Source: Adineta vaga (Eukaryota; Animalia; Rotifera). From it: a stretch of 64,000 nt of DNA. Under the pieces are notes generated by a model. That model saw nothing but the letters and a program-made list of their open reading frames with translations, made no database searches and was not told the origin of the DNA. The DNA is taken from contig CP075496.1 in the NCBI GenBank assembly GCA_021613535.1, positions 14,756,001-14,820,000 on the forward strand, read 5' to 3'. The position numbers and the translations under genes were made by a program. Shown here piece after piece: positions 1,361 to 64,000 of the stretch. The first letter of the stretch is position 1. The number at the start of each line of letters is the position of its first letter.

Positions 1361-1420
1361 TGATGGTGTGAAAGTGTAGATAATAGATACATGCGAAATT
1401 CATATTCTCTTTCACACCCT
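1361..1420. repeat. Telomere-like hairpin element (degenerate)
   Basis: ggtgtgaaag ... ctttcacacc 10-bp stem. Confidence 0.45.
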
Positions 1421-2375
1421 ATAGATGCTCTTAATACCCCCACTAAAAAATTATAGGCAAAACATTTTTCATAATATTAAAACATGTATTTCGAGATTTT
1501 TCAAATATTTCAGTGTGTTCTGTATATGGGTTGCACTTTACATTTACTTTACTATATAGTAACTATTTAAGTTACTAATTTATTGGGAACTATGATAACT
1601 ACTCAATAATGTATAGTATTACTAGTAATTAAGTAATTAATTTTGTATTTCAGTTTCTAAATAAAAGAGAGTATCACTATTATCTGAAGGAAACTTAATT
1701 GAGTTTATGCTTGTCTATACTGGCAGGTCCATCGGATTATAGAAGGATACAAAAAAAAATGTATTAAAAGATGATTTATTTTGAGAGGACGGTGTTTTGA
1801 TCTTGATATAAGAATCTATTTATGTGAGATTTATTATTTAACGCAATAAATTTTAGATATCTATTGAACCTGTCTTTGTATTCGTGATTGAAATAATTCA
1901 ACTAACAGCTCTGGAAAACTTTTTCTATGCTGTTTGATCATATCTAAACTAATATCATATAATAATAAACGTTCGATTCGTGCAGCGAATTGCATAATAT
2001 GAAAAAAGTAAGTAAAAAAATATTATTATTTATGTTTCAGTTATTTACTGAAGTTTAATTGCGTATGAAGTATATGACATCAGATCGACAGAAACTTATT
2101 ATACTTTGCAAAGCTTGTCAGAAAGATCTACACCTATATACAACGGCACTGAAGAACTTGGAAAAAAGTCTTGCTCCTTTTAAAAAGTCACTGACACAAA
2201 AGCATGATGATCCTGCAATACTCTACCACTTTTTTTCGAAGAGTTTATAAAGATACGGATCGATTACATTTAAATTTAGAGTATTATGACAAAGTTGATA
2301 TCTTATATCTGGTTGTCATCTTTCTAAGAAGAATGGATCTGAAGGAAATTTTTGAATAGACATCGAAATTCGACT

Positions 2376-2469
2376 CATCTTGAGGATGTATGCATTGTGG
2401 ATGTGTAAGAAATAGATATATTACTTTTACCCATACACACTCTTACAAATCCTCTCTCACCCTCACAAG
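2376..2469. repeat. Telomere-like hairpin element
   Basis: catcttgaggatgt...tgtggatgtg ... cccatacacactc...caccctcacaag. Confidence 0.6.
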
Positions 2470-2567
2470 TATGACTAATAGTGGTAATGAAAAAAAAAGA
2501 AACTCACTTCTACATCAACACTCAAAACCTTTATATATCGCGATTTGAAGAACATAAGTTACAATCA

Positions 2568-3248
2568 TCAATAAAAAATAAGATCTAGAGCAAATATTAT
2601 CAAATAGAAAATAAATATAATAGCAATGGACCATTCGATAGATGCACCAACAGATTTCAATGTCAATACGTTGTTAGGTCCTTTGATAGTACCCATTACC
2701 ACGAAAGTAATAGCCAAAGGAATAACTACACCGACGAAAATGGCACGAAGAGACACTGTAAAATTTAATTGATTTCGTGAGAATCGATAGATAATTGTAA
2801 ATATAGCAGAGAGTAGAGTGAATACAATAAATAGACCAGTGAAAGTATAATGAGCTCCGCTATGATCCATTGAATCAAAAATTGATAGAAGAATCAGAGA
2901 CGCAGCTCCAATAAAACCACACACGATGGATATGATCGATACACCGCGTTTGAATCGTCGTCGATTTTCCATATCAAAACAGAGTTTAGTAAAGACAAGC
3001 GTAAGAACGAAGAATGTTCCCGTAATACTTGTGCCCACAATAAATGCTGTTTTATGAACAGCACCCACATCAGATATATATACTACTTCACCATCGTCCG
3101 AGTTGTATTGAATGAAACCATCTCGGCCCCATAAACCGAAGAGAGCCGCTATAGTCGAGAGCCATGCAAGAGAGGCAATGACGGATGATAATATACCGAT
3201 GATCCTGAATAATAAATGTTGCCACGATGGAGAGACAGTAATTTGCAT
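2568..3248 (-). CDS. Frag1/DRAM/Sfk1-family membrane protein (fungal Sfk1-like)
   Basis: 226 aa, ~6 TM, 'VYISDVGA' motif, 'LSIFD...H..F..LF', 'SIEWSIA'; intronless. Confidence 0.75.
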   Translation of the reverse strand: MQITVSPSWQHLLFRIIGILSSVIASLAWLSTIAALFGLWGRDGFIQYNSDDGEVVYISDVGAVHKTAFIVGTSITGTFFVLTLVFTKLCFDMENRRRFKRGVSIISIVCGFIGAASLILLSIFDSMDHSGAHYTFTGLFIVFTLLSAIFTIIYRFSRNQLNFTVSLRAIFVGVVIPLAITFVVMGTIKGPNNVLTLKSVGASIEWSIAIIFIFYLIIFALDLIFY

Positions 3249-4362
3249 TAGTTAGTGTAATTATGTGCTTTTCTTTTAAATACGTACGAAGGACACTGAG
3301 GTTGTCATTGTTATTGTATTACCTTTTCTTTTCGTTCTCATCATATATTGTCTCACCTCCCAATATATTCTTATAGTGTATACATGCTCTTTCTTATTAT
3401 TCTTGAGAAAAGAACGTGTGTGTACAAATAATAAGAAAAAAGAATGAGGAAAACGAACGTACCTTTAGAACACAGGTATTGTAGTTTACCAGTTATCAGT
3501 GCGTTCAGGACATACTTTTGTTATTGAAATAAAGCTTGTATTCTGTATAATTGTCCTTTTTTTTATTTCCAATATAATTCTCCCTTTTGTTCATTACAAA
3601 GACGACAAACAACTGTTTAAAACTCAAATTTGTTTCAAAAAAGTAATCTCTCTTTTTTGGGCGTAATATGAATACTTTCGACCCTCCAGATGAAGTGATC
3701 GGTTCTAGAAAGTTACATTCTATTTTTATTTGATATAGTATTTAAGTGGAACTAAGAATACATGGCTCCAAAGGAAAATCGAAAATTTTTAGGACTCACC
3801 TACCCCATTTTTTTTATTATTCGTCAAGGACATTTTCTCTTCTCATTCAATGCTTTGTCACTGCTAGTGTTATTCACCTGAGAGAAAAAGTATTTTATAT
3901 TGTTCTTTTTAATGTTAGCTACACTTCGAAGTGCTTAGAATAGTTAAAACGTAATCATTTTGTCGAGAAAAACATTTATTTATTAAACATGTTTTTTAAT
4001 GAAAGGTAAATAAGTAAATTTCGACTTTTTTCATTGAAATGATCATCATCAGTATAACATATGTCAATAAGTAAAATAAGCAACACAAAATAAATCAAAA
4101 TATCAACATGTTAATATCACAACAATATTATATAGAACAAAGAAAACGAAGAAGATCGTCCAGTTCGATCTATAGGTAAGGAAACATTATGACGTGCAGA
4201 ATGTTACATTTCTGCTACTTTTCACGGCAAACTTAAACATAATCATATGAGCAAAATATAATATAATGTTTGTTTATACAGAGAGAAATGTATTTAAACT
4301 TTTATTCAACGATTCATAGTTATGAGAAAAAAGTCTTCTTTGATATCGAATTTTTATATTAT

Positions 4363-6297: not shown

Positions 6298-6309
6298 ATT
6301 TGAAGCAAA

Positions 6310-7130
6310 GGACAGGGGCGTATAAGCAATGGAAAATGGGCTCAAAGGAATTTATCAAAACTTCGTCGAGAAATTGTTCTAGGAAAGTGAGATAAGCTAT
6401 ATTAGAGCAAATTCAAGCAATACTAAGCGTATTTGAACATGCTTTCATGTGAAAATATCATAAAATATTATAGGGGCTTTTATACATATTATTTGTATTT
6501 ATAATGGGCCAGTTTTTGACTAAAACAGAAAACCTTTGAAAAATATATAAAGCTCATTTTATCTTCATTGGAAAGAGCATTAAATTCTGCATCGTTCTAT
6601 ATAAAGATCATGTCTTTAAACCAATTATTACTACTATTTTTCTATAATTTACTACTATTAAAAATATATTATTTTATACATTATTTTATCTAATTTTGAC
6701 TTTTTCAATACATTTTTTGCGTGAGCCGCTTTCGCTTATATACCATTTGATAGAGCGAAGAAAGCGCTACAAACTGGTATATAAATCATTTAATTTCGAG
6801 TTGGTCCCGGTATTCATAAAAGTCAAAAACTATGTTCGATGCACGAAAAATTCACTTTTTTTATGTATTAGTCAATTATTATTTAATTATTGTTTTTGAT
6901 AGAAGCGACAGTTAATATAATTTTCATTCAAAGGATATTCAGACATATCTCAAATAAAAAATTCTTATATCTTTTGTGTTAAAAAGCAACATTTTTCAGC
7001 CTTAAAATGATGACATGTTAATATATCTTGTAATTTTTCGACATTAGTCAATATTAACATTTTGAAATTTCTGTAAGAACAACTTTATTATTTTAATTCA
7101 ATTTGTTAGGTCAATTTCAAATGAGAAATA
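6310..7130 (+). repeat. Left terminal inverted repeat (821 bp)
   Basis: Reverse complement of 10093-10912. Confidence 0.95.
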
Positions 7131-7167
7131 TAGATATGAAATGGGTAGTTCGTAATAAAAACAAGTA

Positions 7168-9966
7168 TCAATGAGCTAGGTCTGGTGTATCTGTGGTGGT
7201 GTCGTTGTTTGTATCATCATCATCAACATTCATGTAGCTATCGTCTACGAATCCAAGTAGTCGAGCAGCAGAAAGAGGATGGATTTTAGGATTCATTTCT
7301 CCTTGTTGAACACCCATATACCAAAGTAGAGCAGTAATATGAACACAACAGCCGACTGTACGTGATCCAGATGCACATGTACAAAACCAACCTTGTATCG
7401 GCTGCTCCAAGTTGTTGTCAAATTGTACTGTTGCAATATGATGTTTCGTATTGCTGTGGCGTGAGTGGAATCGAACTCGAAGTAAATCACGTTGCTTTTC
7501 ACACAATTCAACAATGAACTCAAGATCATTTTCATCAAGGTAAGAAGATTGAAAGTGTTCATTGATATAAGATTTGCATTGTTTAATTTGATAGTTCCCT
7601 GAAAAATAATATAAACAAAAACTCTACGAGAGAAGATAGGAAACAAACCACAGCTAATGTTTCGTACATCTTCTTCAGTTAAATGTGGAAATATGCACAT
7701 TCTAGAATCATATTTTCTCCAATGCATGTTTTTATCGGCAGATATACTAATTAATCTTTTTTCAAGTTCATTTTCTTTCTTCATTTGTTCTAACATGATT
7801 CTAGCTAATTCAATTCCACTTGATGGATCTTTCATTGTTGGGTGACGAAAAGCATTATGAAGAGCACATACTATATCCAAATCATCAGGTAGAAATTGTA
7901 AAGATGAATTTTTAAGAGAGTTAAAATAATTCCATTCTTTGATTTTGCCATTCACTAAAATATCGGATGATCAACTAGAAGAAAAAATTATCTATAATAT
8001 TTACCACTTTCAATTATCCAACGGTTTTTAGTTATAAATCGGGTTCGGTTTGCTTCTTCTGTTGTAAATTGTTTTTTTCCTTTTAGAAATGCTGGAATTT
8101 GAACTTGAAAACCAAGCTCTTCCATAGAATTTACTGCATCTCTAAAGCCACGATCAACGATAACGATATCTTCGTCATGAAGCCAGTTTTTGATATTTTG
8201 ATCATTATTCTTCAAGATATGTTTGATAATGGAAGCATCATTATTTTTTCCATCGGCCAGAAAAGGTCCGAATACTGACAAAATATAACCATCCTATGTA
8301 AAATTGCAATAATGAAGCTCTCATAATAGTAAGGTAAGCATCATTTTTATAAATCCTATGATGAACTTCAGAAAGCATTCTATCGGCTACGATATTTTAA
8401 GGCTACCTTTTCCTAAATTGTATCCTTATATATTCTTTCAATAGTAAAGCTAAAACTTTTCTATAAATGTGACCTTTCAGTAGTGAACCATATATATGTT
8501 TATGTTCACATTTAAAAGAATACTTATTTTAATCATAGAAGAGGAGGACAAATTACTCTCTTTATTTAACACTTACTGTAGCGGTTATTATCATTGGTTT
8601 AACAAGGTTCTTATGCTTATGCATGCTATATGTTCTTCTTTGAAATTGATTGTCACTAGACTTTTGAATTGTAAGATATGTACCATCCATAACAATACAA
8701 AGTTGATTAGAAACATCGGCAAGTAGAGCTGTTGCAACAGCAGATTGATGATGGTCAATCACCGATTGTCGATTAATATGATCGAAACCTATATAATGTG
8801 GTACAAAATTAATTTTTAATGCTTGTCGCACTTGATTGATAACATGAGAAACTGTTCTTTTGTCTTTTAAACCAAACATAGTTGCTAAAACTCGATTAGC
8901 AAGACCCAAACGAAACTTTGCGAGGAACACTGCTAATGCAACTCGAGTAGAACGAATTTTCGAGTTACGCATGTGTTGGATTTGTTGAAGAAGATCGTTG
9001 AACTGATCTAAAAAATGATTTTATTAGATTCTATTATATATGCATGAATTAAGCTTGTTTTTTATTTGAATTAAAAGTCTCCAAGTACAGATTACTTTAT
9101 AGAAATTCGCTAACAAACGGATTATGACATTCAAATAATCCTAGATTTTTTCAACAGTACTGTCCCAGCAAATGAGATTAACCATCCTACCTTTCGATAG
9201 ACCAGTAATATTGTAATATGCAGTATCATCCAGAGAAGCATCATTATCAAAATCAAATGCTATGTTGCTTTGAGTAACTGTACGAAAGCTGTTGAATATT
9301 TTCTCAATGTCTTGAGAAGTAAAAGAAACAAGATCAGAATCAAATGGAATAATTCGATGAATGGCTTCATAAGACAATTGTCCTCTGCAGAAATGATCGC
9401 CACAACAACGAGCTCCAGGTGATATATATATTCCTCGTTTGATAAACAATGTATTCCTATCTTCTTCATTTAATCGAGTTCGATTATTGCAGTTTCTCAC
9501 TCCACAAACAATACAAGAACTAAACAGATAATAAAAATAAGATCCCTAAAAACATCTTTTCATATTTTACTTTTCATCTTTGCTACATCGATTCACTCTG
9601 ATCTTTACTGATTCAATTTGTTTTGATGTCTGAGTAGATTTTGTGTTATTTTTCTCTTCTAAACCCATATTCTATATATACAAAAAATATTTCACATGTT
9701 AAAGTTACATGAGATATTACTTCTTCAATTTCATCGTCGTTTTCATTCAATTTATCATCATCAATAAGGTCATCAATCTGGTCCTTTGTTTTACGATACC
9801 ATCTTTCATACTTTGATCGGCATCCTTTGCAAACATAAGACGTACAATCGTGTCTTTTATGACACCGAGCAGAGAGATATAGTTTCAGCAATAAATTAGT
9901 GATCGGTCGTGCATTATCAACAACTGTATTACACTGAAAACATCTTGCCCGAGGATTACGAGGCAT
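7168..9966 (-). CDS. Multi-exon transposase: N-terminal Cys-rich Zn-binding region, HTH, DDE_Tnp_4 catalytic domain, C-terminal SWIM finger
   Basis: ORF pieces 9646-9966, 9141-9500, 8562-8972 ('VMDGTY', 'YSMHKHKNLVK'), 7988-8281 ('NNDA', 'VDRGFRD', 'RWIIES'), 7293-7955 and 7168-7506 ('CTCASGSRTVGCCVH' SWIM), separated by AT-rich GT-AG introns. Confidence 0.85.
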
Positions 9967-10092
9967 TGTATATTGTCAAATTAACGGTAACGAATTGAAC
10001 GTTAAACAAAATATATATGACAGAACGGAAAAAAATGACGTCATCATCGTCAACGAATAGTTCTGTCTTTAAGTATCTTTTTTAAAATGAAG

Positions 10093-10912
10093 TATTTCTC
10101 ATTTGAAATTGACCTAACAAATTGAATTAAAATAATAAAGTTGTTCTTACAGAAATTTCAAAATGTTAATATTGACTAATGTCGAAAAATTACAAGATAT
10201 ATTAACATGTCATCATTTTAAGGCTGAAAAATGTTGCTTTTTAACACAAAAGATATAAGAATTTTTTATTTGAGATATGTCTGAATATCCTTTGAATGAA
10301 AATTATATTAACTGTCGCTTCTATCAAAAACAATAATTAAATAATAATTGACTAATACATAAAAAAAGTGAATTTTTCGTGCATCGAACATAGTTTTGAC
10401 TTTTATGAATACCGGGACCAACTCGAAATTAAATGATTTATATACCAGTTTGTAGCGCTTTCTTCGCTCTATCAAATGGTATATAAGCGAAAGCGGCTCA
10501 CGCAAAAAATGTATTGAAAAAGTCAAAATTAGATAAAATAATGTATAAAATAATATATTTTTAATAGTAGTAAATTATAGAAAAATAGTAGTAATAATTG
10601 GTTTAAAGACATGATCTTTATATAGAACGATGCAGAATTTAATGCTCTTTCCAATGAAGATAAAATGAGCTTTATATATTTTTCAAAGGTTTTCTGTTTT
10701 AGTCAAAAACTGGCCCATTATAAATACAAATAATATGTATAAAAGCCCCTATAATATTTTATGATATTTTCACATGAAAGCATGTTCAAATACGCTTAGT
10801 ATTGCTTGAATTTGCTCTAATATAGCTTATCTCACTTTCCTAGAACAATTTCTCGACGAAGTTTTGATAAATTCCTTTGAGCCCATTTTCCATTGCTTAT
10901 ACGCCCCTGTCC
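10093..10912 (-). repeat. Right terminal inverted repeat (820 bp)
   Basis: Reverse complement of 6310-7130. Confidence 0.95.
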
Positions 10913-12105
10913 TTTGTATTCTTTACGTGCGTATTTTTGTCAGTATAAATAGTAGCTGAATATAATAAAGATAATATGCAATGAAAATAATAGATTTTTG
11001 TAATTATTTTTTTCAATTACTTGTTCGAAAAAAAAATGAGGAAATATTGCAGGTAAAGAATGCACAAATAAACTAGCTCATTTTAGAAAGACAATTAAAA
11101 AGTAAAGGAGAGAATACATGAATAAAAGCGTCAGGAACCGAGAAAATAAAAAGTAGGTAGTCGAATTATTACTTTAAAAAAATCAACTATTAAAGATAAA
11201 AACTCATTTTCATGAGTGGTTAAAGTAATCGAAAAACTTGAATATTGGCGTTCAACTTGATAAATTCTACTTCTCCAAATTTGAGCGAGAAATATTTTTC
11301 AATTAAATAAATCATATGATTATCATTTGATCAACGAATGATAAAAAACAGATTAATCGTGAAGAATATATTTTGTGCGCTTACTGCGAAGTATAGAAAA
11401 AGACAATATTTATAATTCAAAAACAAAAAAGTTATCGAATATCATTCATAATAGAATGATTGCTGTAGATTAATAAAACCAACGAGACCATATAGCACCC
11501 TAAATTAATATTACGAATGATGTTGTTGCGTTTTCATTGTATGCTATTACAACCAATAAACATGAACTAGTGATTACCAGGAATATATTATCAATCTAAT
11601 AGGATCGGTCAGTGTATCCGTTTACACAATAATTTTTGAAAATCTCATCCAATTGTCATGAAATTGGGTACACAGTTTTTGTCTCATGAATATCTCTATC
11701 AATCATTCATTTATGTAGTTATAGTAGAAAATGTCATATATATAAATAAACAAAGCTGGGTGTTCATCTGCCTGAGTCTCGAGGAAAGTCGACATGGGAT
11801 TGAGACTATCAATGGGTTGTCATGGAAAGCGTGCTGAGCGAAATTTCTCCATGTCAGAATAACATGAATCACCGATGTAATTACAGTATTATTTTTTTTC
11901 AAAATTAAAATGCACGTTCCTATAACACTCTTTGATGATGAAGGCGAAGTGTAAGTGCTTTTTTAACAAAACACTCACCCGCATCCTCGATTCTTGAATA
12001 TGATTAAAAAAATGACACACAAACTTATGATAAAATGTTCTGAGTATGAGATTATGAACGTTCATTTAGACGTAAGCGTGAGAAAGTATATGACTACTAG
12101 TTAGT

Positions 12106-15100
12106 TCAACCGGAACAAGTAGATTGTCCAAGGGTCGGATCGGCGAAGTTGTTTGGACACACTAAACAAGCTTGAGATGATGTACGTTGTGGAATCGGTT
12201 GATAGGTTCCTGAAGGACAGGGTTGTACACTGCTTGCTCCCGCTAAACAATATACACCACTAGGACAAACCATACAACTTGATCGTCCAGAATATTGAGA
12301 ATATGTACCGGCAGGACATTGCAAACAAGCTTGAACCGAAACGCTACCTGTATTTGGTTGATATGTTCCCGTGGGACATGGTTGCATGCTGCTTGCACCA
12401 GCTGTACAGTAGTAACCACTAGAACAAATCGAACAACTTGACTGTCCAGAAGTTGGATTATAAGTGCCAACAGGACATTGTAAACAAGCTTGAATTGTAA
12501 ATCTACCTAAGATAGGTTGATACGTTCCTGAAGGACAAGTCAACATGTTAATGGATCCAGCTGGGCAGTAATAACCGGTAGAACATCTGGAACAACTCGT
12601 TTGAGCCCCAGATTGACTATAAGTGCCGTTAGGACACTGTAAACAAGATTGAATCGACGATTTACCTTGGATAGGTTGGTAAGTTCCTGGAGGGCATGAT
12701 AGCATATTACTAGATCCAACGGGGCAGTAATAACCAGTAGAACAAATAGAACAAGTGGATTGAGCATAGTTTGGATTGTAAGTACCACTGGGACATGCCA
12801 AGCAAGCTTGCACTGATGTAGCATTGACGTATGGCTGATAGGTTCCAGTAGGGCATGGTTGTGCATTAACTGATCCAGCCTCGCAATAAGAACCACTAGG
12901 ACATAATACACAGTTTGATTGACCAAAATTCGGATTGTAAGTACCAACTGGACATTCTAAACAAACTTGAGACGAATTATTTGGATCGATAGTTTGATAA
13001 GTTCCTGGTGGACATTGTGATAGACTGTTAGCTGCATTTTGACAATAACCGGCATACCAATACCAATTCCAAGCACAATCGATGCAAGATGACTGGCCAG
13101 CGCCCGTAGTGAATGTATTGTTAGGACATGATAAACAAGCTTTAGCTGAAACACTGCCAGTTGACGGTTGATAAGTATACATAGGACACGACTGTGGGCT
13201 GCTTTCTCCAGCTGAACAATAAGCACCGGCAGGACAATTTGAGCAGGCCGACTGTCCAGAATATTGACTATATGTACCAGCAGGACATATTGAACAATCT
13301 TGAACTGTGATACTACCACTTTTCGGTTGATATGTGCCTGAAGGACATGATACTGGAGTGCTTGATGCTATCGGACAAAATGATCCACTAGGACATATTG
13401 AACAAATAGATTGACCAGAATTCGGATTGTAAGTACCGTTAGGACATGGTAAGCAAGCTTGATCTGAAATACTACCTGGTATCGGTTGATAAGTTCCTGA
13501 AGGACATGCTTGTGGAGTACTTGTTCCACTTATACAATAAGAACCAATCGGACAAGTTAAGCAGGTCGATTGTCCAGGATTTGTGCTGTAAGTACCACTG
13601 GGACATTTCGAACAATCTCCAGTCGAAATACCGCCTTCATTTGGTTGAAAAGTTCCTGAAGGACACGCTTGCTGACTTGTTGATCCATATGGACAATAAA
13701 AACCAGCAGAACAACTATAGCAACTTGACTTACCAACATCAGAATTGTACGTACCATTAGGACATTTTAAACAAGTTTGCACTAAAGCTCTGTAAGGAAG
13801 TGCTTGATACGTTCCTGATGGACATGGTATTGGACTACTTCCTCCACCTGGACAATAATTACCAACAGGGCATACCATACAACGAGACTGTCCGAGGCTT
13901 GGATTATATGTACCATTGGGACATTTCAAACATGATTGAGATGAGATAATACGTGTGGCTGGTTGATAAGTTCCTGAAGGACACGGTTTTATAGCAGTAG
14001 CTCCAACTGGACAGTAATAACCGAGTGGACAAATCGAGCAAATGGACTGTCCGGAAATAAAATTATAGGTACCATCAGGACATTTCAAGCAAGATGCCGT
14101 TGATACACCACCCATAGAAGGTAAATACGTTCCTACTGGACATGGTAGAGTACTGTTTGCTCCAACTGGACAATAGTAGCCAATAGGACAGAATGAGCAA
14201 CTAGATTCTCCAGGATTCAAACTATATGTGCCACTTGGACATTTCAGACAAGCTTGAACTGAAGTACTACCTTGAGTTGGTTGATAGGTTCCCGCAGGAC
14301 ATGGTTGAGCACTATTTGACCCTGCTATACAATAATAACCAATAGGACAAATCAGGCAACTGGATTGTCCAATAGTTGAACTATAAGTACCAGCAGGACA
14401 GCTCAAACAAGATTGAGCTGAAATACTGCGTACTATTGGTTGATAAGTTCCTATAGGACATGTTTGAGCTCCATTTGTTGTTCCTGGACAGTAATAGCCA
14501 CTGGGACAAAGAAGGCAATTCGATTGACCTGAAGTTGTTGTATAAGTACCGTTTGGACATGACAAACAAGCTCGAGCTGAAGCACCGCCTGGCATTGGTT
14601 GATAAGTTTGTAAAGGACACGCAATTGCGTTACTAGCTCCAACTGTACAATAATAGCCACTAGGACAAATCGAACAAGTAGATTGTCCCGTATTTTGAGT
14701 ATAAGTACCGGCAGAACAATTGAGACAAGCATCAATTGATGTTGCACCTACCATTGGCTGATATGTTCCAGAAGAGCATGGAACTAAATTATTTGTTCCA
14801 CCTGGACAATAATAGCCGCTAGGACAATTCGAACAAGTAGATTGTCCCGTATTTTGAGTATAAGTACCGGCCGAACAATTGAGGCAAGTAACAATGGATG
14901 TTGCACCTAGCATTGGTTGATATGTCCCTAAAGGACATGGGTCGGGATAGGCTCTTCCAGCTAGACAATAACTACCAGTGGTGCAATTATAACAACTAGA
15001 TTGACCGTAGTTTGGTTGGTAGCTACCTTCTGGACAACTCAAACAAACTTGAGTGGATGTGTTTACATCGATGGTCAGATAGTTTCCTGGATAACACCAT

Positions 15101-16265: not shown

Positions 16266-16310
16266 TTGGGATGGGTGTCGGTCTCTTGTATTCACCCACG
16301 CCCTCAAAAT
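16266..16310. repeat. Telomere-like hairpin element, spacer type B
   Basis: ttgggatgggtg tcggtctcttgtatt cacccacgccctcaaaat. Confidence 0.7.
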
Positions 16311-17817: not shown

Positions 17818-18021
17818 ATAACAAGAAGAATTATTGACTATGACAGACAGAGAACTCTTATCTTTTATCCTATGCTGAAACACTGTACAATTCCATTCAT
17901 ATTTAATCAAATAAAAGAAAATTATTAAAATAACATTCTTCTTTTTCTTATAACTTGTCCTATAATTGATTACATAGCTTTGAGAACAATACAAATATTA
18001 ATTATAAGAATTCTATTTAGA

Positions 18022-50580: not shown

Positions 50581-50617
50581 GAGTGTGAGTGTTGAGAGAC
50601 GCATCCCACACCCTCAA
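50581..50617. repeat. Telomere-like hairpin element
   Basis: gagtgtgagtg ... cccacaccctcaa. Confidence 0.6.
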
Positions 50618-51045
50618 AGAAACAAAAAACTGATACTCAAATGTCAACCAATGTGTCTAAAAATTTATTTCCATCGTTTACAACATCAAATGTAAATATA
50701 AACTAAAGAGAGTTAATTATCAGGATTTTTTAAAGTTCTATATGAAATGTTTTTCTATAGGGTCCACAAATAACTCTCATTGATCCCAATACACAAACAA
50801 CATTTATTTGGCTGATATGGAGTAAGATATACAAAATTTCGTGCAAGTAATCAATACAAAGAAATACAAAATAAGAAATGCAGTCGAATAAGAACAAAAT
50901 TTAATAAAACAGTTATTAATAATCAGATTTGTGATAAGAAATAATTTGTGCATATGTGTGTAAATATAGAACAATTCTGAAAAAAGATTGTCTAGAGTTA
51001 GAGAATTTTGAATATGGAAAGAAAAATATACTTCGTGCATATCTA

Positions 51046-51663: not shown

Positions 51664-52795
51664 TACTTGCAATGTAAAAAAGAATGAAATATTTAATCAA
51701 TTTTTTATGAGAACTTTGACAGGTTTCCGATCGAACTAAGAGAATGAATGTTTTTTTATGCAACAGACATACATTATCGATCGGTAATAATCATGTCTCG
51801 AGCAACATATGGAAAAAATGAATCATCGAATTCTGTGTGTGTGATGTTTTACTTTTTTTCTGTTTTTATTCAATCATAATTTTTCACCAGAAGGTAAAAA
51901 AACTGTTGGCATAATAAGTGCAAGATTCAAAAACGAACTACGAAGCATTCTGAACATATTCCCCCTAAATACTCAGAAAGTTTCGAAAACGTCTGATCTC
52001 ATAAATGTATATATATATACTAATTAATGCTGTACGAAACTAGCTAAAGATAGTTAGAATAAAATAAGTGAGATTCTTTCAAAATCAGATAAGATTAGAC
52101 ATTTTAGTTGTTACTATAAACCACGAGTGTTTCTAAACTGCCCATCATCTAAAATGTTCTACCTTTCCATAAACATGTTTAATCCTAATTTTGACCAGAC
52201 CATTCTAAAGTACATGCTGACGTTTCTATAGAGTTTGACAGGGAATAGTTTGGAATGAATTGAAGTATATTATACCCGTATTGTTTGAAGAAAAATAAGT
52301 GAGTGTAAGTTTTAAGTTGGAGGTTTTTAGGAACCCCCTTTCAACCCCCCTCCCCCGCCCCCGACAGACGTATTTTGATTACTGACACTACACTCTGTTC
52401 TCGTTACGAAAACTCGATTAATAGAGACAATTTTACAGCTATACTCTTGAGGGCAACAAATTCTTATAGTAAAGAGTTTTCTAAATTTTAGCTTATGCAA
52501 GTTCCACATTTTAGTCCTAGAGGGATTGCGCTTAGAAGCTTTTCTAATTAACATGTCTTTTCTTGCAAGATTATGACCATGCAAGTATGGATGTGTTGTA
52601 TTTCTAGTTTGACAACACCTCCAGCTACTCATCTGCAGTGTCATATTGAATTGAAAAACCCAGTGTATGTTCACAGTTTACTTCCCAGCGGAGCTCACCG
52701 TCACTCACTATTGCTGTTTTATTCGTTTTCTATTTCAAGTGCGCACTACTATCTCCTCAAACAAAGATCTCGAGCAATCCAGTTTGGCATCGATT

Positions 52796-53770
52796 ATGTC
52801 TACTTATGGAACAATGTTTTTTATCAATATGTTACATTTCATTTTCTGTGTTGTTTTCACTTGTTTATGTCATCTTTTTCCATCGACAATTACTCGATTG
52901 AATAGTCAAGCGTTTGCATCTCAAATTGGTCGACATTTTGGACAACAATCACATCATTTTCAACATCTTATCTGGCATATCTATCATAGATCAACGATTG
53001 ACCGTGTTATTCACGTGATCACAATCGTTTTGGATACATTGATTTGGATTTTCTTTGTAATCTATTATTTACCTATCTGTTTCCAATTGCTCGTCCTGGC
53101 TATACTTATTTTTCAAGCTTTATCTGCTCAAATCCGCTTTATGACGAATGATCATGGCAAGATTTCGAAAACGAAGATTGATCAAAGTATATGTCTCGAT
53201 TGTGATACATACCATGAGTATCCGGAAACTATTGGACATTATATTTCATTGTTTCAATTACAGTGGACTTGGAATCACGAATATGTAGGCATTTTATCTT
53301 CGTTTGTATGGATTGCATTGTATTGCAGCGGACATATGTGTCTAATACTCGTTAGTTATTCTTCATTATCATTACCATACATCCTTGAAATAATGCATGC
53401 GATCATTCTTATCAACACGTTTTCTCGAGTCATTGGTCATCTTCTGGAACCTATTCCACCATTTTTAATTGAAAATGAACAATTTTTACCATGGCGTAAC
53501 ATTAAAATGCTTACTATTATGGTCTGTGATCGTGGAGAAGTATTTCGTTTATTTCAAATTACTTTCACTGGATATTTGAGTGAATATCAAGCTGGGTGGC
53601 CGTTACGATTTCCACAAGTGTTTATACATACATGGATTTCTCTGTTGATAAATTCAAATGATGGGAAATCGATTGTGCGTCATTGTCGTGAACAGGCTTG
53701 TCGAATCCGATCAAAGGGATGGAAGGCTACACATCTCACTGAAAATATGTTTGAAGCCTTATATCATTAA
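52796..53770 (+). CDS. Multi-pass membrane protein, possibly DUF962/Mpo1-related
   Basis: Long ORF (track 52667-53770, likely start MSTYG); His motifs 'WHIYH..IDRVIH' and 'IGHLLEP.PP' resemble DUF962; several TM segments. Confidence 0.5.
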   Translation: MSTYGTMFFINMLHFIFCVVFTCLCHLFPSTITRLNSQAFASQIGRHFGQQSHHFQHLIWHIYHRSTIDRVIHVITIVLDTLIWIFFVIYYLPICFQLLVLAILIFQALSAQIRFMTNDHGKISKTKIDQSICLDCDTYHEYPETIGHYISLFQLQWTWNHEYVGILSSFVWIALYCSGHMCLILVSYSSLSLPYILEIMHAIILINTFSRVIGHLLEPIPPFLIENEQFLPWRNIKMLTIMVCDRGEVFRLFQITFTGYLSEYQAGWPLRFPQVFIHTWISLLINSNDGKSIVRHCREQACRIRSKGWKATHLTENMFEALYH

Positions 53771-53803: not shown

Positions 53804-53854
53804 ATCTTAAGAGTGGGTGTGGGTCTCATGTATTCTGACCTACCCACACCCACA
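53804..53854. repeat. Telomere-like hairpin element, spacer type B
   Basis: atcttaaga + perfect 12-bp stem gtgggtgtgggt / acccacacccac. Confidence 0.8.
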
Positions 53855-54299: not shown

Positions 54300-56060
54300 A
54301 TGCAATTGGAATCCTTAGTCAATGAATTATTACTTGATCTATTTAAATATTTCGATGCTGTCGATCTTCTTCGTGCTTTTTATGGACTTAATTCTCGTTT
54401 TGAGAATCTTCTCTTCTGCCGCTATCAAAGTTTTCATCTCGACTTAAAATCTATTTCGAAAAAAGATTTTGATTTTATTTGTCAACAACATCTATCAAAG
54501 ATTATCGATCGAACAATTTCACTTCAACTCTCCGATGATGATGCTACACCAGGACAAACTGATTGTTTTCTTTCTTATGGTTTTATTCTTCGTCAATTTA
54601 GTTGTTTAAAGTCATTTTCATTATTAAATATTTATTCTGAAAATGCAATCAACAAATTACTAATGGAATTAAATTATCTTGAACATCTCACTTATCTCAA
54701 AATTAATACATTGGCTTATCGCCTTGAAAACGAAAATATTGAGCATTTTTTTCAGACCATTTTCAATCTACCCTATTTGACCTATTTTTATTTGAAAAAC
54801 TCGATGTCAAGCTATAATATTTGTTTGAAAACTTCCGAAGTGATTAGTTCATCGCTCCAGCATTTTATAACTGTGGATAAGACTTTTTATTTATGTGAAT
54901 TATATAGTTTATTCAAATCAACATCTCATCTTCAGCATCTGCGCATAAATATTAAAAGAGATTCTAATTTTATACCACACCCTCAAATATCGTATGTTGT
55001 TTTAACATTGACCGTACTGAAAATTTCCTTCGAAGGATCATTTACTGAGATGAGAAATCTTTTAGAAAATATGCCAAATTTATGTCGTTTAAATATTGAA
55101 ACACGGAAGTTGGACATAAATGGACATCATTGGAATGGAATTATTACCAATATTTTATTAAAACTGAAAATATTTCAACTTCGCATGCAGATTGATTTTC
55201 GTAATAATAACAATAGAGAAGAAGAAGTCGATGAATTACTTAATTCATTTCGCACTCCATTTTGGCTTGATGAACGTCAATGGTTTGTTCGATGTGATTG
55301 GAATTCAGAAATGAGATCTCACTGCACAGATCAAGACATAGTACTCTATACCTTACCTTATGCTTTTGATACTATTCTACAAATTACTTCGAATTGTTCA
55401 AAATCAACTTGTCCTCAAGATAAAAACTATTGGTCATATGATTGTGTGCATCATTTTTCATTTTTTACTCAAGGTGCCTTCAAATATTTATCTCATTGGC
55501 CTATTCAACTTTCTAACATTGAACATCTTACATTAAATTTTCCTTTCGATAATTCAATTTGGTCCATCTTTCCAAGATTAGATAAACTTATCTCACTCAA
55601 TCTATTTGGATATGAACATAATGTTCAATCTCAATTACAAACATTATTCGATCGTACACCATATCTCTATTCATTAACAGTCTACAATATGTATTTTACA
55701 CGATTATCTCTTACAAGTAATTCAATTCGTCGACTGAGTTTTTTATGGTTGGACGAACCTTTCGATGTAAACCAATGTGTTGAATTGTGTCGTTCATCGC
55801 TTTTTCAACAATGTGAAGTTCTTCAAATAAACATTAGAAATCGAAATAGTATACTTGATCTCATCAAAGAATTGCATAATCTTCGAGTATTAATTGTTAA
55901 ATGTAAAGATGACAAATGGAAAGGAGAAAATCAAATATCATCATTCACATCATCCAAACAAAAAGATGTGCTTATGAAATGGTTAAATGCTCGTTTGCCA
56001 TCGAATTACTATATTACCAGAGCTGGATATCGTCTAATTAGAGTGTGGATTGGTTATTAA
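54300..56060 (+). CDS. F-box-like / leucine-rich repeat protein (rotifer-expanded type)
   Basis: N-terminal 'LESLVNELLLDLFKYF...LLRAFYGLNSRF'; LRR-like 'L..MPNL..L.I'; 'FRTPFWL', 'LYTLPY'. Confidence 0.8.
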   Translation: MQLESLVNELLLDLFKYFDAVDLLRAFYGLNSRFENLLFCRYQSFHLDLKSISKKDFDFICQQHLSKIIDRTISLQLSDDDATPGQTDCFLSYGFILRQFSCLKSFSLLNIYSENAINKLLMELNYLEHLTYLKINTLAYRLENENIEHFFQTIFNLPYLTYFYLKNSMSSYNICLKTSEVISSSLQHFITVDKTFYLCELYSLFKSTSHLQHLRINIKRDSNFIPHPQISYVVLTLTVLKISFEGSFTEMRNLLENMPNLCRLNIETRKLDINGHHWNGIITNILLKLKIFQLRMQIDFRNNNNREEEVDELLNSFRTPFWLDERQWFVRCDWNSEMRSHCTDQDIVLYTLPYAFDTILQITSNCSKSTCPQDKNYWSYDCVHHFSFFTQGAFKYLSHWPIQLSNIEHLTLNFPFDNSIWSIFPRLDKLISLNLFGYEHNVQSQLQTLFDRTPYLYSLTVYNMYFTRLSLTSNSIRRLSFLWLDEPFDVNQCVELCRSSLFQQCEVLQINIRNRNSILDLIKELHNLRVLIVKCKDDKWKGENQISSFTSSKQKDVLMKWLNARLPSNYYITRAGYRLIRVWIGY

Positions 56061-58006
56061 GTTAACAATAGTTCGGGGTATTTCCATCTTGATAATTTGA
56101 TACGTTCTTATTCTTTCAAATGATTTGTTTAATATATATTTTTTTAAATATCTACATTTAACTTGATTGAAGGTGAGGATGCATTTTGATGGTTAGGTCT
56201 CTTCTTTATCCACATCTACACTCTGCTAACAACTTTTCATCATAAAATAACATCTGATTGATCAACATTGTGAACTATTTTGTACAAGAGAAAAAGTTGT
56301 ACAACATAGACGAGATTTAGTTGGAAGATTTTCGAAATGACTAAGTGACAACTAATTCACTAGCAACAATTAACACATTCTTCATTCGAACATGTCAATC
56401 ATACATCTAGAAAAGGAACTTGTTTTTGAAATGTTAGAATAGTATAATATTCGACTTAGAGCGTTTTAAATGATGTTTATTTTTACTTTTATCTTGGTCA
56501 ATATTTCACATTTATGTACATCTCGATAAAAGTCTTTATGTTGGAAAACATACTGCAAACACATCTTGAACTTTTGGAAAGCAATCGATGTAGTGTATTT
56601 CGTATGAAATTCACCTTATGAATAATCCGCGGCAGAACACAGTATTATAGTCTTTAGTACCATATATCTTACCGTACCAGTATGGTATACTATCAGCATC
56701 GCGCACCCATCAGTCTCTTATTTAAAGTTTTTGAAGAAACAGCTCTCGCAACTCCTTATGAAAGATTTGAGATCTTTTTTGAAATTTATCCATTGATTTT
56801 ATGGATAGAAATTGGAACTAATCGATGATGACATTAATGGTTATATTTTTAATATGTTTAAATATGTGAAAACTAGTCATAATTAGATCCGATAAAGTCC
56901 TATTATTACTTTCTGATAAGTCGCAAAAGTGAGAGTATTCACTCTTCGATAATACTTAAAAATCTATATTGAGTTATCCTTTGACAAATTCAAAATAGTG
57001 TCGTTTTATTTTCGTTTATTCTGATTTTTAGTATATGAACAAGAATAAACTTTTTGTTGCAATCATGAGAATCATATTGAGTAGCAACTTTAACTTTTAA
57101 AGCAAAGTTAAGTGTCACGTCTAGTATAGATTCAATATATTTTATTCATAATCAATCACATACAAATTCGTACCCGTACTCACACTTCTATCTTTTTTTA
57201 TCGAAATCATGATTCTTCGTCATTGTTTCTCATCCACATCCACATCCTTTTGGCTAAGCTCTATATCTTGCTGTTGAGATATTTTTAACGGGAAGTATAC
57301 TTCATTTGACAACAAAATTATATATTTATATGCGTATAGGTTGAAAATGATATTAACTACTTACCTTCAGGTAGGTATAAATATCTCGATAGCTCTTTTC
57401 TTTTCTCTACTTTGTAATACAAAAGTGTCGTTAAATATTATTATTCTTTTCTTTCCTTTTTACATACTTTTTATTAGCGTTCTTATTATCAATTTGTAGA
57501 GAAATATGACGAAGCATATTTTTTCTTTACAAAAGACGTAAAACAGCAATGCAATCTCATCGTTGATACGATGAAGAGAAAGTTTCTTCTTTGCTTACGT
57601 AGTATTGAATTCTACTTCGTAAAATATAAATACCAGATCGATGATGTAAAAGTATGAGGAAAAGTCGAAATTTTCCGAACATTATCCATATATTGCTGAT
57701 TAAATAAAATTATTAAACCAAATAACCACTGAGTTTCTATCTGCGAAGCAACACGCAAAGTCACGTGTACACATAGTTTTGTAAAAGTACTTTCCATTCG
57801 CTCATATACATTAACATGTTATTTTTTTTTCTATTACGTTTCTTCTTCATCCAAAGAACGCAAAAAAACTGCACTGTCATGTAATAATAATTCTATAGAA
57901 TACTCGACTAGAAAAAATGCTCGTCATCAGCAACATGTAAACAACAAGGAATATATATATTTAATGTTTCATACCGGAATAATTCTCACAGAAAGAAACA
58001 AACACG

Positions 58007-59490: not shown

Positions 59491-59615
59491 AAATGATCAA
59501 TGATATATAACAACCTTGACTTAATCTCAGATTTTAATAATTTTTGTTCGTTGGTATTGTAAAATTATCTTCACTCACATTTCTTTAATACCGGCGACAG
59601 AATAAAGAAATCATT

Positions 59616-59678
59616 TGTGGGTGTGGGTGTGGGTGTCCAATAGGCGAATATCCACATCTACACCCACACTCTCAAGAT
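59616..59678. repeat. Telomere-like hairpin element, spacer type A
   Basis: (tgtggg)3 tgtccaataggcgaata tccacatctacacccacactctcaagat. Confidence 0.85.
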
Positions 59679-59843
59679 TTTAACATTTTTTTTTCAGTTA
59701 TTTCGTACTTCTCCAGATATAGCAATGGTAAGATTTATTCGCTAATATATAAGCTGATCAGTTATATCTTGAATATTTATTTCAGTTTAAAACGAATACT
59801 ATAATCGTAAAAGTAGCATTTATTTTCAGAGCTTAGTATTTAA

Positions 59844-60998
59844 TTAATTTATTTTTGGATTTGTTGTTGTTATTGCCTCAATGATGGAGATAGGGCCTTC
59901 CGTCTTGTATACATGTTTTAATTCATAACCACTTTTATTCAACAGATTGGTATATTCCGATAAACTTCTCTCTTTAGCTCCTAGATTTGATAACATGTGA
60001 ATATCTGATACATGTGCTTCCCAATTATCTTTGTTCTCTGACGTAATTATTGATTCAATTATAAACACTGTTATTGATTTTTTCATTTGTGTTTCATTTG
60101 CATTCAGTATAGATTTTAAGATTTCAATCGATTTTTCATCATTCCAATCATGAATAATAGCTTTGAATATGTAAGCATCACCTGATGGTATTGTTTCTGA
60201 TTTGAACATATCACCACTGATAAATTCATAACGATTTATTTCGATTTGTTTTCGTTGAAATTCGTTCGGATTGATTGTTTTGGCGTTTTCAATAACATGA
60301 TCTAAATCAAATAATATACCGTATAAACTCTGATATTTTTCCATAATTGATGATAGTAGTGTTCCTAATCCACCACCGATATCAACTAATGTATGAAAAC
60401 GACCAAAATCAACTGTTGAAATTATTGCTGTTGCTGTATAATTTGAATAAGAAAGCATTCCATTATTGAAAATATGTGCATATTCTTTATTTTCTTCTCT
60501 TTTCATATATTCAAACATGTTACAACCGAATGCTTGTTCAAAACAATTTCCATTTCTGTTACCAAATTTAATTATTGATGGAAAATATGAATAAGTTTTG
60601 TCTGTAATTGGATTTATAAATAGTCGAATTATGTCAGGAATTTTTGACCAATGATTACTTGTCAATAATAATCCATCTTCAGTCAATTGAAATCGAATGG
60701 TTTCTTCTGGTTGATTTGAGTTTTTTTCATCAGTATTTATTTGTGTAATAATACCAGCATCAGCAATGACACGTAATAATCGATAGAGATATTCAGCATT
60801 CCAATTGTTTTTAGGTAATTGACTTAATTCTAATGCTGTAATTGGCGTTTTGTGATCAGCCATAAGATCAGGAATACCTAATTCACAAAATGTCCATATA
60901 GCATATTCAACTATTCGATGACGTATTAATGAGAAATATTTTGATAAACCATTGAGTTCCATAGGAGAATGAATAATTTGATTGGTATTTTCTGCCAT
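59844..60998 (-). CDS. SAM-dependent O-methyltransferase (Methyltransf_2 / COMT-type with dimerisation domain)
   Basis: 'LVDIGGGLG', 'LFDL', 'GDMF', 'IIHDWND', 'GAKERS'; intronless. Confidence 0.9.
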   Translation of the reverse strand: MAENTNQIIHSPMELNGLSKYFSLIRHRIVEYAIWTFCELGIPDLMADHKTPITALELSQLPKNNWNAEYLYRLLRVIADAGIITQINTDEKNSNQPEETIRFQLTEDGLLLTSNHWSKIPDIIRLFINPITDKTYSYFPSIIKFGNRNGNCFEQAFGCNMFEYMKREENKEYAHIFNNGMLSYSNYTATAIISTVDFGRFHTLVDIGGGLGTLLSSIMEKYQSLYGILFDLDHVIENAKTINPNEFQRKQIEINRYEFISGDMFKSETIPSGDAYIFKAIIHDWNDEKSIEILKSILNANETQMKKSITVFIIESIITSENKDNWEAHVSDIHMLSNLGAKERSLSEYTNLLNKSGYELKHVYKTEGPISIIEAITTTNPKIN

Positions 60999-61598
60999 TA
61001 TTTATTCAATTGAATATGAATGAATAAATCAATGAACTAGAGAATAATATTTATTAAAAGCGAAAAATATACTTGCAACTTACTGAGAAAAATTAGTTTG
61101 TTTGGTTTTTATTTGAAAGTGACTATCTTTGAGTGATGAGAAAAAGAACACGTATTTATATATAAGTAATCATACCGTTTTCGCTTTCTTTTTTCTTTCT
61201 ATGTAAATCGACGCGAGTACGCGTGCTTATTCGTACTAAATGTATGCGTGTTTACTAAGAGGTGAGAGTATGAGTGCTGAATGAATGAAATAAGCAACAC
61301 CCTTCAGTGAGAAAGTTAAAATTGGATGATTTATGACTAGAAGTGTAATCATTTACTTAAAAGATTATCATGTATAGCTGTGCATAACAAGGATTAATTT
61401 GTCAAACTGAGACCAAAAATGGAATATTTTGTTCAAGCATTTGATTCACTTTACTGAAGAGCTCATACAACGGTAGATTGCAATTGCTTGTATAATTCTC
61501 TATCAACAATTAAGATTGGGTCTGAAAAACTAATACAGTCAATACAATTATTTACAAAGGCGTATAGAGAAGTTCAAATTCAGACGTTTTCTATAGCC

Positions 61599-61666
61599 TG
61601 AGGGTGTGGTTTTGTGTGTATCCCTTATTCATTTGAGCCCATATCCATACTCCCACCTACACCCTC
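61599..61666. repeat. Telomere-like hairpin element
   Basis: tgagggtgtgg ... cccacctacaccctc. Confidence 0.7.
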
Positions 61667-62548
61667 GAAAAAAGTTTTCGCAGAGAGAAAGAGAGGACTT
61701 TTAGACTTTCTGAAAGATTCTGCATCTCTGATAACAACATTGATTAATCTTTATGATAATTTAATTATTATTTGTCGAATATTATCAATATTGATTATTA
61801 AACATATGCTATATTTTAAACGAAGAGTTCATCCTATAATGGATTAATATCTTATCAACTGTCATTTGTGGATGTGCATAGTTGTCTTAATGCACATTCA
61901 TCAATACACACTATTTAATTTAATAAAATACTGAACAATTCTTATGCCCTGTCTCTCTGTGAATATAAATAAGGTTATAATAATAATCCAAAAAACATAA
62001 TGGAAATTAGATGAGATTAGTATATTTAAACATTACAATAGATAAAAAGTTAATTTGAATTTTATTTTAGAAAATATTTCTTGATTATTGTTTACGTATA
62101 ATTTATGATAAAACCAATAGAACGGTATGGAATGCCTTCTTTTAACCCTTGTTATTCTAGTGTATCATCAAATGGATCTTCACTAATTAATTGCCAATGA
62201 TCAAATAAACATTGTAAAATGCTTTCATTAGTTTGATTTAAATAAAGATCTTTAGTAAAATCTATAAATAAAACGAAATATGAACAAAATTCAATATTAT
62301 ATAATTCTTATTAAATGATTTACAAACAAGTAAGTAAGCTTTAATTATCAATTGAGAATTGTCTATAAGATCATAATTATCTAAAATAAATATCAATAAT
62401 TCATTTAATATTTTTTTACAATTTTAGTTAGAAAAACTTGTATTTCTGATAAATAAATTGGTTCGAAAAGTCTTAAATGAGCTGTGAGTATTACCGCATA
62501 TATAACTCGTCGAATAGTTGAAATTATTTGTTCATCTCCTCGATGTAT

Positions 62549-62597
62549 TTGAGGGTGGGTGTGTGAACATATCTTCTTCACACCCACCCTCAAGATG
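62549..62597. repeat. Telomere-like hairpin element
   Basis: Perfect 15-bp stem ttgagggtgggtgtg / cacacccaccctcaa + gatg. Confidence 0.85.
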
Positions 62598-63120
62598 GTT
62601 TTTATTGTACCATTTTTAATTAAATATTGATCAATATCAATTAAACCATAAATATTTCTATATGATCACTTGAATATTTATTATAAAAATATCATCTTTT
62701 TTCCTTCATAAATTTTGAACTCATAAATCGTACTATTTGATTTGTATAAACAATAACAGAAAAGATACAACCAATAGGATAAAAACGATTTTTATTAGAT
62801 TATCATACCATTTTTGAAATATAGATCATTAATGGACCATTATTTATTTCAGTACGATATTTTTGTACAATAATCGACGATGATAAATGAATAAGAAAAT
62901 AGAAATGGTCTAAATATAATTATTTTTCTTATTAAATTCAATACATCGATAAATTTTATAAAGTATTGAAGATATTTGTTCTTATTACAAATTATTCTCG
63001 AATGATGCCGATTATTATTTATATCAAGAAATGAAATATTCTAAGAAGTATTACAGAATTGTTTTTATTTAATAGAAAAGTATAATATCTACATCTATTT
63101 TCATAGATAAAATATACAAT

Positions 63121-63576
63121 TTAATTTTGAATAGCAGGTATATTTTGTCGTAAATCACCTTTAGCATCAATAAATAAGATTTGAAAAAGAATAAATAATG
63201 AATATCGTTCGATACTAATAGATTGATTATCTAACATTTTAATACTATTATTATCTAATCGTAATTCTTTAATGTCGAATTTTAATCGCTGATAAAATTC
63301 TCGTAATGTATTGGGTTGTTGAATACCTAATATTTGAAGACTAATAGATAAATCTGAAAATAAATTGTAATCATTGATATAACCACCACATTCTGTTGAT
63401 AGTTTTTCAATTTTTGATATAATACTATGACGATATTGAACTGATGCATAAGATGTAATATTTATTTTTTTCATTAGTAATATTTCATCAGATGATGAAT
63501 GTGAACATCGAAGATGAGAAATATAAATGAATAAGTTTTTGTTTAGAAACATCTGACGATAACAAATCAGTTTCAT
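63121..63576 (-). CDS. Small hypothetical protein, bacterial-like
   Basis: 151 aa intronless ORF; 'GGYI.DY.LFSD.SIS...GDLRQNIPA' core; family assignment uncertain. Confidence 0.5.
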   Translation of the reverse strand: MKLICYRQMFLNKNLFIYISHLRCSHSSSDEILLMKKINITSYASVQYRHSIISKIEKLSTECGGYINDYNLFSDLSISLQILGIQQPNTLREFYQRLKFDIKELRLDNNSIKMLDNQSISIERYSLFILFQILFIDAKGDLRQNIPAIQN

Positions 63577-64000
63577 TTAGTTAAATCTCTATGAAGTTAT
63601 GTACAAAAACTTAGCGATTCTTCTGTGCTTTCTGTCTGAATAGGAACTCATGCAATATCATGAAAGATCAATAGATGTCGTATAAGTCTGAACATTGATA
63701 CTATAGTTTGTATAGATATCATCTATAGAAAAAGATCATTCTTTCTCATCTAAAAGTAATAACTGTGAGAAAAAAAGAAAAGATTCTATACAACTATGGT
63801 TTGATAAAAATCAGAATAAAAATTTTTATTTTTCTTCTTTTCCTTACACCCACACTCACAAGATATTTGCGTTATTTTGATAAGCTTTTCAGTGTTATTG
63901 GAACATGTCCCATCTTAAGGTTGTAAGAAGTGGACAGTCTGTATTAAAATTAACAGCAAATTATGAAAATTCCATTGAGAAAAAGTAATTGTCTTTTACC

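Follow-up and report, generated by a model that had tools for sequence, protein, structure and literature searches.

Non-coding DNA in a 64,000-nucleotide stretch of Adineta vaga chromosome (contig) 4 (bases 14,756,001–14,820,000, here called the window) is interrupted by small palindromes built from telomere-like repeats, and we propose that each of these units is a junction scar left where two DNA ends were each capped with telomeric sequence and then joined, a reading to which we give a probability of about 0.55. The window lies 405–469 kb from the right end of contig 4, which measures 15,224,634 bp in an assembly of six contigs totalling 100.8 Mb. Each unit spans 40–90 bp and consists of a G-rich telomere-like arm, a spacer of 8–30 nt and a C-rich arm. 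The scar reading is based on six observed features: the G strands of both arms point inward, the units lie at junctions, no target duplication accompanies them, their ends are ragged independently of each other, one arm has been remade on one side only, and many copies are decayed. Rather than acting as switches, the units most likely preserve a history of breakage and patchwork assembly.

A search of the window with TGAGGGTGTGGG, allowing up to 2 mismatches, returned 24 matches compared with 0.89 expected, and 0 of 100 shuffles gave 24. This 12-mer enrichment and a direct reading of coordinates bear out the hairpin family described in the original prediction, which was made from the sequence alone. 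By direct reading the window holds about 18 clear units, 5 weak or doubtful ones and two half sites consisting of a C arm. Clear copies are found at 2376, 16266, 18022, 26371, 27333, 28467, 30480, 36367, 39891, 40138, 49344, 50581, 53804, 56167, 59616, 61599 and 62549; the copies at 1361, ~11935 and ~61259 are weak or decayed, those at 32630 and 50277 are doubtful, and the half sites at 27061 and 63846 are both real. The inward-pointing G strand, likened in the original prediction to the geometry of an end-to-end telomere fusion, is a property of the whole genome: the G-then-C order (GGGTGTGGG N6–36 CCCACACCC) occurs 673 times and the opposite order 5 times, and a strict pattern (TGAGGGTGTGGG N8–30 CCCACACCCTCA) occurs 27 times versus 0 for the opposite order. 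None of the 27 strict copies is more than 3.7 Mb from a chromosome end, and units in general are rare in gene-dense chromosome cores and concentrated in the gene-poor subtelomeric thirds. Of the strong telomere-like tracts in the 264 kb surrounding the window, about 70% stand in G-then-C pairs and only 1–2 are tail-to-tail. Because the strict pattern is matched by only about 2 of the copies in the window, the genome total is probably in the thousands, by rough extrapolation. A half unit also occurs outside the window: 2.5 kb past its end, an outer motif, G arm and F1 spacer (see below) abut unique DNA directly.

The arms are made of the telomere repeat of the species itself, as had been suspected. 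The only terminal array read, that of the left end of contig 4, consists largely of TGTGGG, with TGAGGG and TGGG units in small numbers, and the interior units of the arms are likewise mostly TGTGGG. The A. vaga telomere repeat is given as (TGTGGG)n (PMC8494291), and TGAGGG and TGTGGG hexamers are both present in A. vaga telomeres and at Terminon 3′ ends (PMC6431247). This left end of contig 4 is the only one of the 12 contig ends in the assembly that terminates in telomere repeats; the last 3 kb at the right end of contig 1 carry a ~530-bp tandem repeat and no terminal telomere array.

The ATCTT/AAGAT flanks noted previously are real and reach further out, as an outer motif or leader (ATCTTGAGGG), with the palindrome extending to AAAACCATCTTGAGGG on the left and to its complement on the right. 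Genome-wide, CCCACACCCTCAAGATGGTTTT with up to 2 mismatches has 148 matches versus 0 in the control, and places in the genome that carry the outer motif are almost always hairpins. Arm starts form nested truncations of AAAACCATCTTGAGGG: 11 of 66 show ATCTTGAGG, about half (by eye) show (T)TGAGGG, and the others are plain repeats. Outer ends are shortened to unequal extents on the two sides of a unit. Spacers fall into families that recur in both orientations, among them CAGRCTATACTCTTAA (the F1 core), GTGAAGAAGATATAC, GTTGGATAGATGTAGTAC and CTCTTGTATTC, and the exact F1 core was inside a hairpin in 14 of 14 inspected cases; among copies with a common spacer, arm length and unit order vary widely. 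A lone CCACACCCACACCCTCAAGATGGATTT lies in a chromosome core (contig 5, ~9,282,482–9,282,566), with no upstream G arm and with TATAAATA about 20 nt before it. As a candidate telomerase RNA gene this site (9282545), which reads the minority GGAT and not the common GGTT, is a weak lead only and was set aside.

Units sit at junctions between segments of differing history, a part of the earlier module-junction idea that is upheld by a deletion in a pseudogene of eEF2 and by the boundaries of a 10.4-kb segment. At the hairpin at 62549, comparison with the real gene by tblastn and by DNA alignment shows a 55-nt insert in place of about 735 nt missing from the eEF2 pseudogene; exons of the real eEF2 gene match both flanks, and the insert ends in the full leader on one side and in TTGAGGG alone on the other. 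The pseudogene itself (62066–62900, − strand) also appears in low-depth contigs of RNA-like runs with intron-like joints at 62261/62330 and 62380/62438, a signal that may be cross-mapping from the real, highly expressed gene. Window positions 39938–40139 and 50615–50966 match contig 1 at 17821430–17821229 and 17820482–17819927; by match coordinates these two pieces are separated by 747 bp on contig 1, compared with 10,475 bp in the window. Homology to contig 1 ends within 1–3 nt of the hairpins at 40138 and 50581, and at both junctions of the 10.4-kb segment the outer motif stands on the host sides and not on the sides of the inserted segment.

The hairpin at 61599 has a second allele in one DNA run (X8; both DNA and RNA runs were used as assembled contigs), in which a 32-nt G tract replaces 61522–61623. 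The tract starts right after a TTGGGT seed in the flank, 77 bp deeper into the left flank, and the spacer, C arm and right flank are unaltered. Depths of 57 for the second allele and 64 for the reference are as for two haplotypes. One hairpin side has thus been re-made in one allele, in keeping with the earlier suggestion that a break within a unit could be healed. No direct repeat of at least 2 bases flanks any of the four copies that retain both full ends, so that target-site duplication was seen in 0 of 4. Ohnologous or paralogous synteny for scoring presence and absence was sought for window 48–64 kb and none was found.

The hairpin at 36365, at the end of a ~490-bp dispersed repeat, is only suggestive as a further junction, because it is a single coincidence. 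That repeat (35885–36370) ends in a T run, has at least 35 copies in core and subtelomeric DNA and no Rfam match, and may be a short interspersed nuclear element (SINE) or a miniature inverted-repeat transposable element (MITE). A palindrome at 36000–36040 was rejected as a family member since it belongs to this repeat, and an apparent repeat at 36052–36366 bounded by two hairpins was discarded when a wider search put its left 'hairpin' inside the ~490-bp repeat.

The copies in the window, none of which carries a strand assignment, are as follows.
1361–1422, decayed hairpin with a surviving 10-bp stem, GGTGTGAAAG/CTTTCACACC
2376–2468, hairpin; left outer motif CATCTTGAGG; C arm long and decayed
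11935–11985, weak decayed copy, ~120 bp past the stop of the − strand gene 12106–15177
16266–16309, hairpin; spacer of the CTCTTGTATTC type, the reverse complement of the 18022 spacer
18022–18077, hairpin; perfect 14-bp stem made of atypical units; folding z −7.1
26371–26435, decayed hairpin; CCTCAAGAT at right; folding z −0.2
27060–27080, half site, C arm without a G arm
27333–27394, decayed hairpin; ATCTTGAGG at left; folding z +0.6
28466–28517, decayed hairpin; homology to chromosome 5 (~2.19 Mb) begins 13 nt rightward
30480–30527, near-perfect hairpin; complete left outer motif AAAACCATCTTGAGGG; 13-bp stem; folding z −6.3
36365–36424, hairpin beginning where the ~490-bp dispersed repeat (35885–36370) naturally ends on the right
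39891–39944, hairpin with an F1-like spacer, at the left edge of the 200-bp fragment 39938–40139, homologous to chromosome 1 at 17.82 Mb
40138–40189, hairpin marking the left boundary of the 10.4-kb segment; chromosome 1 homology stops at 40139
49344–49386, moderately decayed hairpin
50580–50618, hairpin marking the right boundary of the 10.4-kb segment; chromosome 1 homology restarts at 50615
53804–53854, hairpin; 12-bp stem; 35 bp past the stop of open reading frame (ORF) 52667–53770; folding z −4.0
56167–56219, decayed hairpin, ~100 bp past the stop of ORF 54300–56060
59614–59680, hairpin between convergent genes; reached by the spliced RNA contig from the + strand one
61257–61306, weak decayed copy
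61599–61667, hairpin for which DNA run X8 shows a second allele
62549–62598, hairpin in the eEF2 pseudogene (− strand); 15-bp stem; folding z −6.2
63841–63866, half site, C arm followed by AAGAT

The stems look like the product of neutral decay rather than of a selected fold. Best ungapped arm complementarity averaged 8.9 within units and 8.0 across units, with 12 of 2000 permutations attaining the observed value, and among ten folded copies five had z scores of −3.7 to −7.1 and five of −2.4 to +0.6, with three of the ten no better than shuffles. Maintained symmetry, as originally proposed, thus survives as a weak excess of pairing within units; the decayed copies have lost their fold and covariation is marginal. 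Because stems barely beat cross-paired arms and old copies unfold, selection for structure is unsupported.

How such scars might form can be laid out in steps. The ends would come either from both sides of one chromosome break or from a chromosome terminus plus a free fragment, and each would gain a short G-strand telomeric tract on its 3′ strand, presumably templated by RNA and made by telomerase or by an Athena/Terminon reverse transcriptase. The broken end would anneal by a few bases, at a variable point, to an RNA reading ...CCCACACCCUCAAGAUGGUUUU and then be extended through a variable part of the leader into TGTGGG repeats; this template RNA would contain CCCACACCCUCAAGAUGGUU, and the nested truncations of AAAACCATCTTGAGGG would follow because the annealing point varies. 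A bridging step is probably needed, because two G-rich 3′ tails cannot pair: one tail may use a unit already present, as DNA or RNA, as the model for a new spacer and C arm, or a reverse transcriptase may jump to the other tail, and the joint would then be sealed. Spacer families in either orientation would arise because the bridge copies an existing spacer. Once formed, a unit would be neutral in non-coding DNA and decay, and its palindromic form, with a telomerase seed on either side, may let it break once more.

Several points weigh against this account. Conserved spacer families are not predicted by plain end joining, and the bridging step, proposed only to account for them, is its weakest part; no source RNA or gene was found for any spacer, and a genome-wide search found no hammerhead ribozyme upstream of F1. 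Irregular units are mirrored between the arms of the copies at 18022 and 62549, which copying of the whole palindrome fits better than two independent additions do. At the left end of contig 4, the junction of the true telomere does not begin with the outer motif, an RNA-templated origin of that motif is hypothetical, and the junction evidence comes from four loci in one window.

The mirrored arms bring forward a rival in which the whole palindrome is a tiny non-autonomous mobile unit: a copy of a resident hairpin, as RNA or DNA, would mimic the (ACACCC)n 3′ end of Terminon RNA, be copied onto exposed ends by the Terminon reverse transcriptase and be captured at breaks without duplication. This explanation, which we consider unlikely, would account for spacer families with near-identical cores at many loci in both orientations, for the irregular arms mirrored in some copies and for a defined palindromic terminus; the same repeats are found on Terminon 3′ ends (PMC6431247), and Penelope-like elements can self-prime into inverted junctions and act in trans (PMC3846280). 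It fits poorly with arms whose length and unit order differ widely at constant spacer, with outer ends truncated independently on each side, with half units and with an allele in which a single arm was altered and flanking DNA was lost. Nor does inserting one unit account for the two hairpins around the 10.4-kb segment, and neither a master copy nor a hammerhead was found beside a spacer.

Selection for a function in cis, as paired telomere-protein sites acting as boundaries or insulators, as transcription-ending structures or as pre-placed healing sites, is in our judgement quite improbable. Telomere-factor sites do act as promoter or boundary elements in yeast and plants, and the hairpins lie in non-coding DNA, often 35–250 bp past stop codons, are reached in one case by an RNA contig (59616) and include one Rotaria magnacalcarata copy that is identical in three assemblies. 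Many copies are nevertheless decayed and unfolded, with stems hardly above cross-paired arms; on a rough gene map they occupy all region types at 0–3 per intergenic region with exponential-like spacing. They are rare in gene-dense cores, and the surroundings of the orthologous gene showed none in A. ricciae or in Rotaria sp. Silwood2. DNA contigs end at hairpins as well, and the RNA contig end is probably an assembly break. We give very little credence to a cut-and-paste MITE or foldback element with telomere-like terminal inverted repeats, or to attC-like or repetitive extragenic palindromic (REP)-like sites of a dedicated enzyme. A short, dispersed, intergenic palindrome with conserved ends has the general appearance of such elements, and transposons bearing telomere repeats exist in ciliates. 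However, duplication is missing from all four complete copies, the ends are ragged and differ between the two sides, one site has lost ~735 bp, a longer partner element sharing these ends was not seen in 264 kb, and a linear element bearing its own telomeres would have the reverse polarity. Nothing points to the attC-like site-specific recombination raised in the original prediction, and the covariation of structure-specific sites is absent.

Returning to the junction-scar reading, its closest parallel, as regards the leader, is found in vertebrates. Vertebrate telomerase adds repeats at breaks together with a piece copied from the template-adjacent part of its own RNA, giving interstitial telomeric sequences (ITS) and, with the telomerase RNA (TERC) piece, TERC-ITS; like the A. 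vaga units, these are the repeats of the species itself at internal sites, inserted in one step at breaks with no target duplication and often with loss of flanking DNA (PMC2246262, PMC8537989). The constant flanking piece of TERC-ITS, copied from telomerase RNA, resembles the A. vaga leader ATCTTGAGGG with its nested starts. Vertebrate loci differ in having one tract in one orientation and in being rare (41 TERC-ITS loci in 22 species), whereas A. vaga units have two facing tracts and spacer families and number hundreds to thousands in the subtelomeric thirds. Human 2q13 is a head-to-head telomere array that arose from a chromosome fusion. Fusion arrays of this kind share the G strand pointing inward from both sides; they are single, long and flanked by the subtelomeric DNA of two former ends, whereas the A. 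vaga units, of which there are very many, measure 40–90 bp, enclose a spacer that is not telomeric and have ordinary genes or gene fragments as neighbours.

Among bdelloid retroelements, Terminons use (ACACCC)n or (TCACCC)n to prime on exposed ends, and their copies enclose captured host genes (PMC6431247); endonuclease-deficient Penelope-like elements prime on broken ends and switch templates (PMC3846280, PMC6431247), and Penelope-related reverse transcriptases self-prime and jump templates, yielding palindromic inverted junctions (PMC3846280). A pattern of hammerhead core plus C-repeat identified 25 Terminon/Athena 3′ ends in the genome, several of which continue from (ACACCC)n into CCCTCAAGAT. 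Because Terminon 3′ ends carry CCCTCAAGAT too, the leader marks the inner start of telomeric tracts generally. Athena/Terminon elements become attached through their C-repeats to G-rich ends left exposed and form subtelomeric chains that hold host genes between telomeric tracts (PMC6431247, PMC3846280), and in this genome the hairpins have in common with them the CCCTCAAGAT motif, which Terminons carry at 3′ junctions. The hairpins differ in having inverted tracts and no ribozyme or ORF, whereas Terminons have tracts in direct orientation, a hammerhead and coding sequence. No hammerhead ribozyme was found in the window, in its flanks or in 262 kb of other loci. A derivation of the spacers from Terminon RNA tails, downstream of the site of hammerhead cleavage, was considered, dropped as evidence and retained just as an idea: the 59616 spacer and one tail share GGATATT, a match of a kind expected by estimate about 18 times by chance, and no Terminon had a matching tail and no hammerhead stood upstream of F1.

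Telomeric repeats (neotelomeres) and Athena fragments have been found at deletion breakpoints in A. vaga lines, and interspersed repeats have been raised as possible scars; that work used clipped reads at a few breakpoints and contains no two-armed unit, leader or spacer families (PMC13564844). Short or interspersed telomeric repeats are known from bdelloid subtelomeres (PMC2861651, PMC8494291, PMC7943196, PMC13564844). The two-armed unit, the leader and the spacers are undescribed in those four papers; a description in the Athena–Terminon work of 2007 or 2017 is possible.

The architecture extends to other bdelloids. Ten metagenome contigs carry units bearing the same leader, one allelic pair among them differing by a 12-nt indel in an arm, and A. 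steineri has four same-leader units in 21 kb. G-then-C pairs without the Adineta leader occur in Rotaria sp. Silwood1, Rotaria sp. Silwood2 and R. magnacalcarata, and 20 kb of A. ricciae and 25 kb of Didymodactylos showed no units. Because pairs are found in both Adineta and Rotaria, the unit architecture is common to at least two bdelloid families, and the leader seems Adineta-specific, in both cases from small samples. Positional conservation was not found near the one gene that could be compared across species (A. ricciae and Rotaria sp. Silwood2), where the neighbourhood is non-syntenic.

Bdelloids survive massive chromosome breakage and carry unusually many foreign genes near telomeres. 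If the units are scars, their signature can be counted and dated genome-wide, compared between haplotypes and species, and searched for in reads of irradiated or desiccated lines, with the leader ATCTTGAGGG as a handle for telomerase RNA or another template. More speculatively, bdelloids might cap any free end, their own or foreign, with a leader-started telomere seed and then stitch ends head-to-head through a templated bridge. The hairpins could then be counted as fossils of breaks and of captured fragments, horizontally acquired genes among them, and the leader would point to the telomerase RNA template region. In practice, the units also break short-read contigs and inflate the counts of 'telomeric repeats' used as a proxy for subtelomeres.

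On a rough gene map made from ORFs and Pfam hits, copies lie in divergent, convergent and tandem intergenic regions at 0–3 per region, often two, with exponential-like spacing that is apparently random in non-coding DNA. Random-looking spacing across all three region types, with some regions lacking a copy, does not fit the earlier proposal of a hairpin in nearly every intergenic region acting as a gene boundary. That copies avoid exons and large transposons was also claimed: none lies in the 4.6-kb transposon at 6307–10915, and for exons the claim draws on ORFs and a few RNA contigs. This element has 825-bp terminal inverted repeats (99.9% identical) and no telomere hairpin, and because three further copies on contigs 1, 3 and 5 are 100% identical, it is a very recently active transposon. 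Beside the hairpin at 59616, RNA of the − strand gene ends at ~59762–59769, about 90 nt away. Transcript ends at this hairpin itself were rejected: DNA contigs break at the same place, probably at an assembly break, and the end of the RNA contig there is therefore uninformative. An Rfam scan gave one transfer RNA (tRNA) and one sub-threshold microRNA (miRNA)-like match, the latter at 54871–54937 inside ORF 54300–56060 and probably a chance hit to a family of miRNA precursors (score 28.6 bits, cut-off 44 bits; E 0.25). Genes of the beta-lactamase family and for an O-methyltransferase lie 34 kb apart in the window (25022–26077 and 59844–60998) and 5 kb apart in Rotaria sp. Silwood1 (10001–11161 and 16588–17970); the O-methyltransferase has many bdelloid paralogues and bacterial-type relatives.

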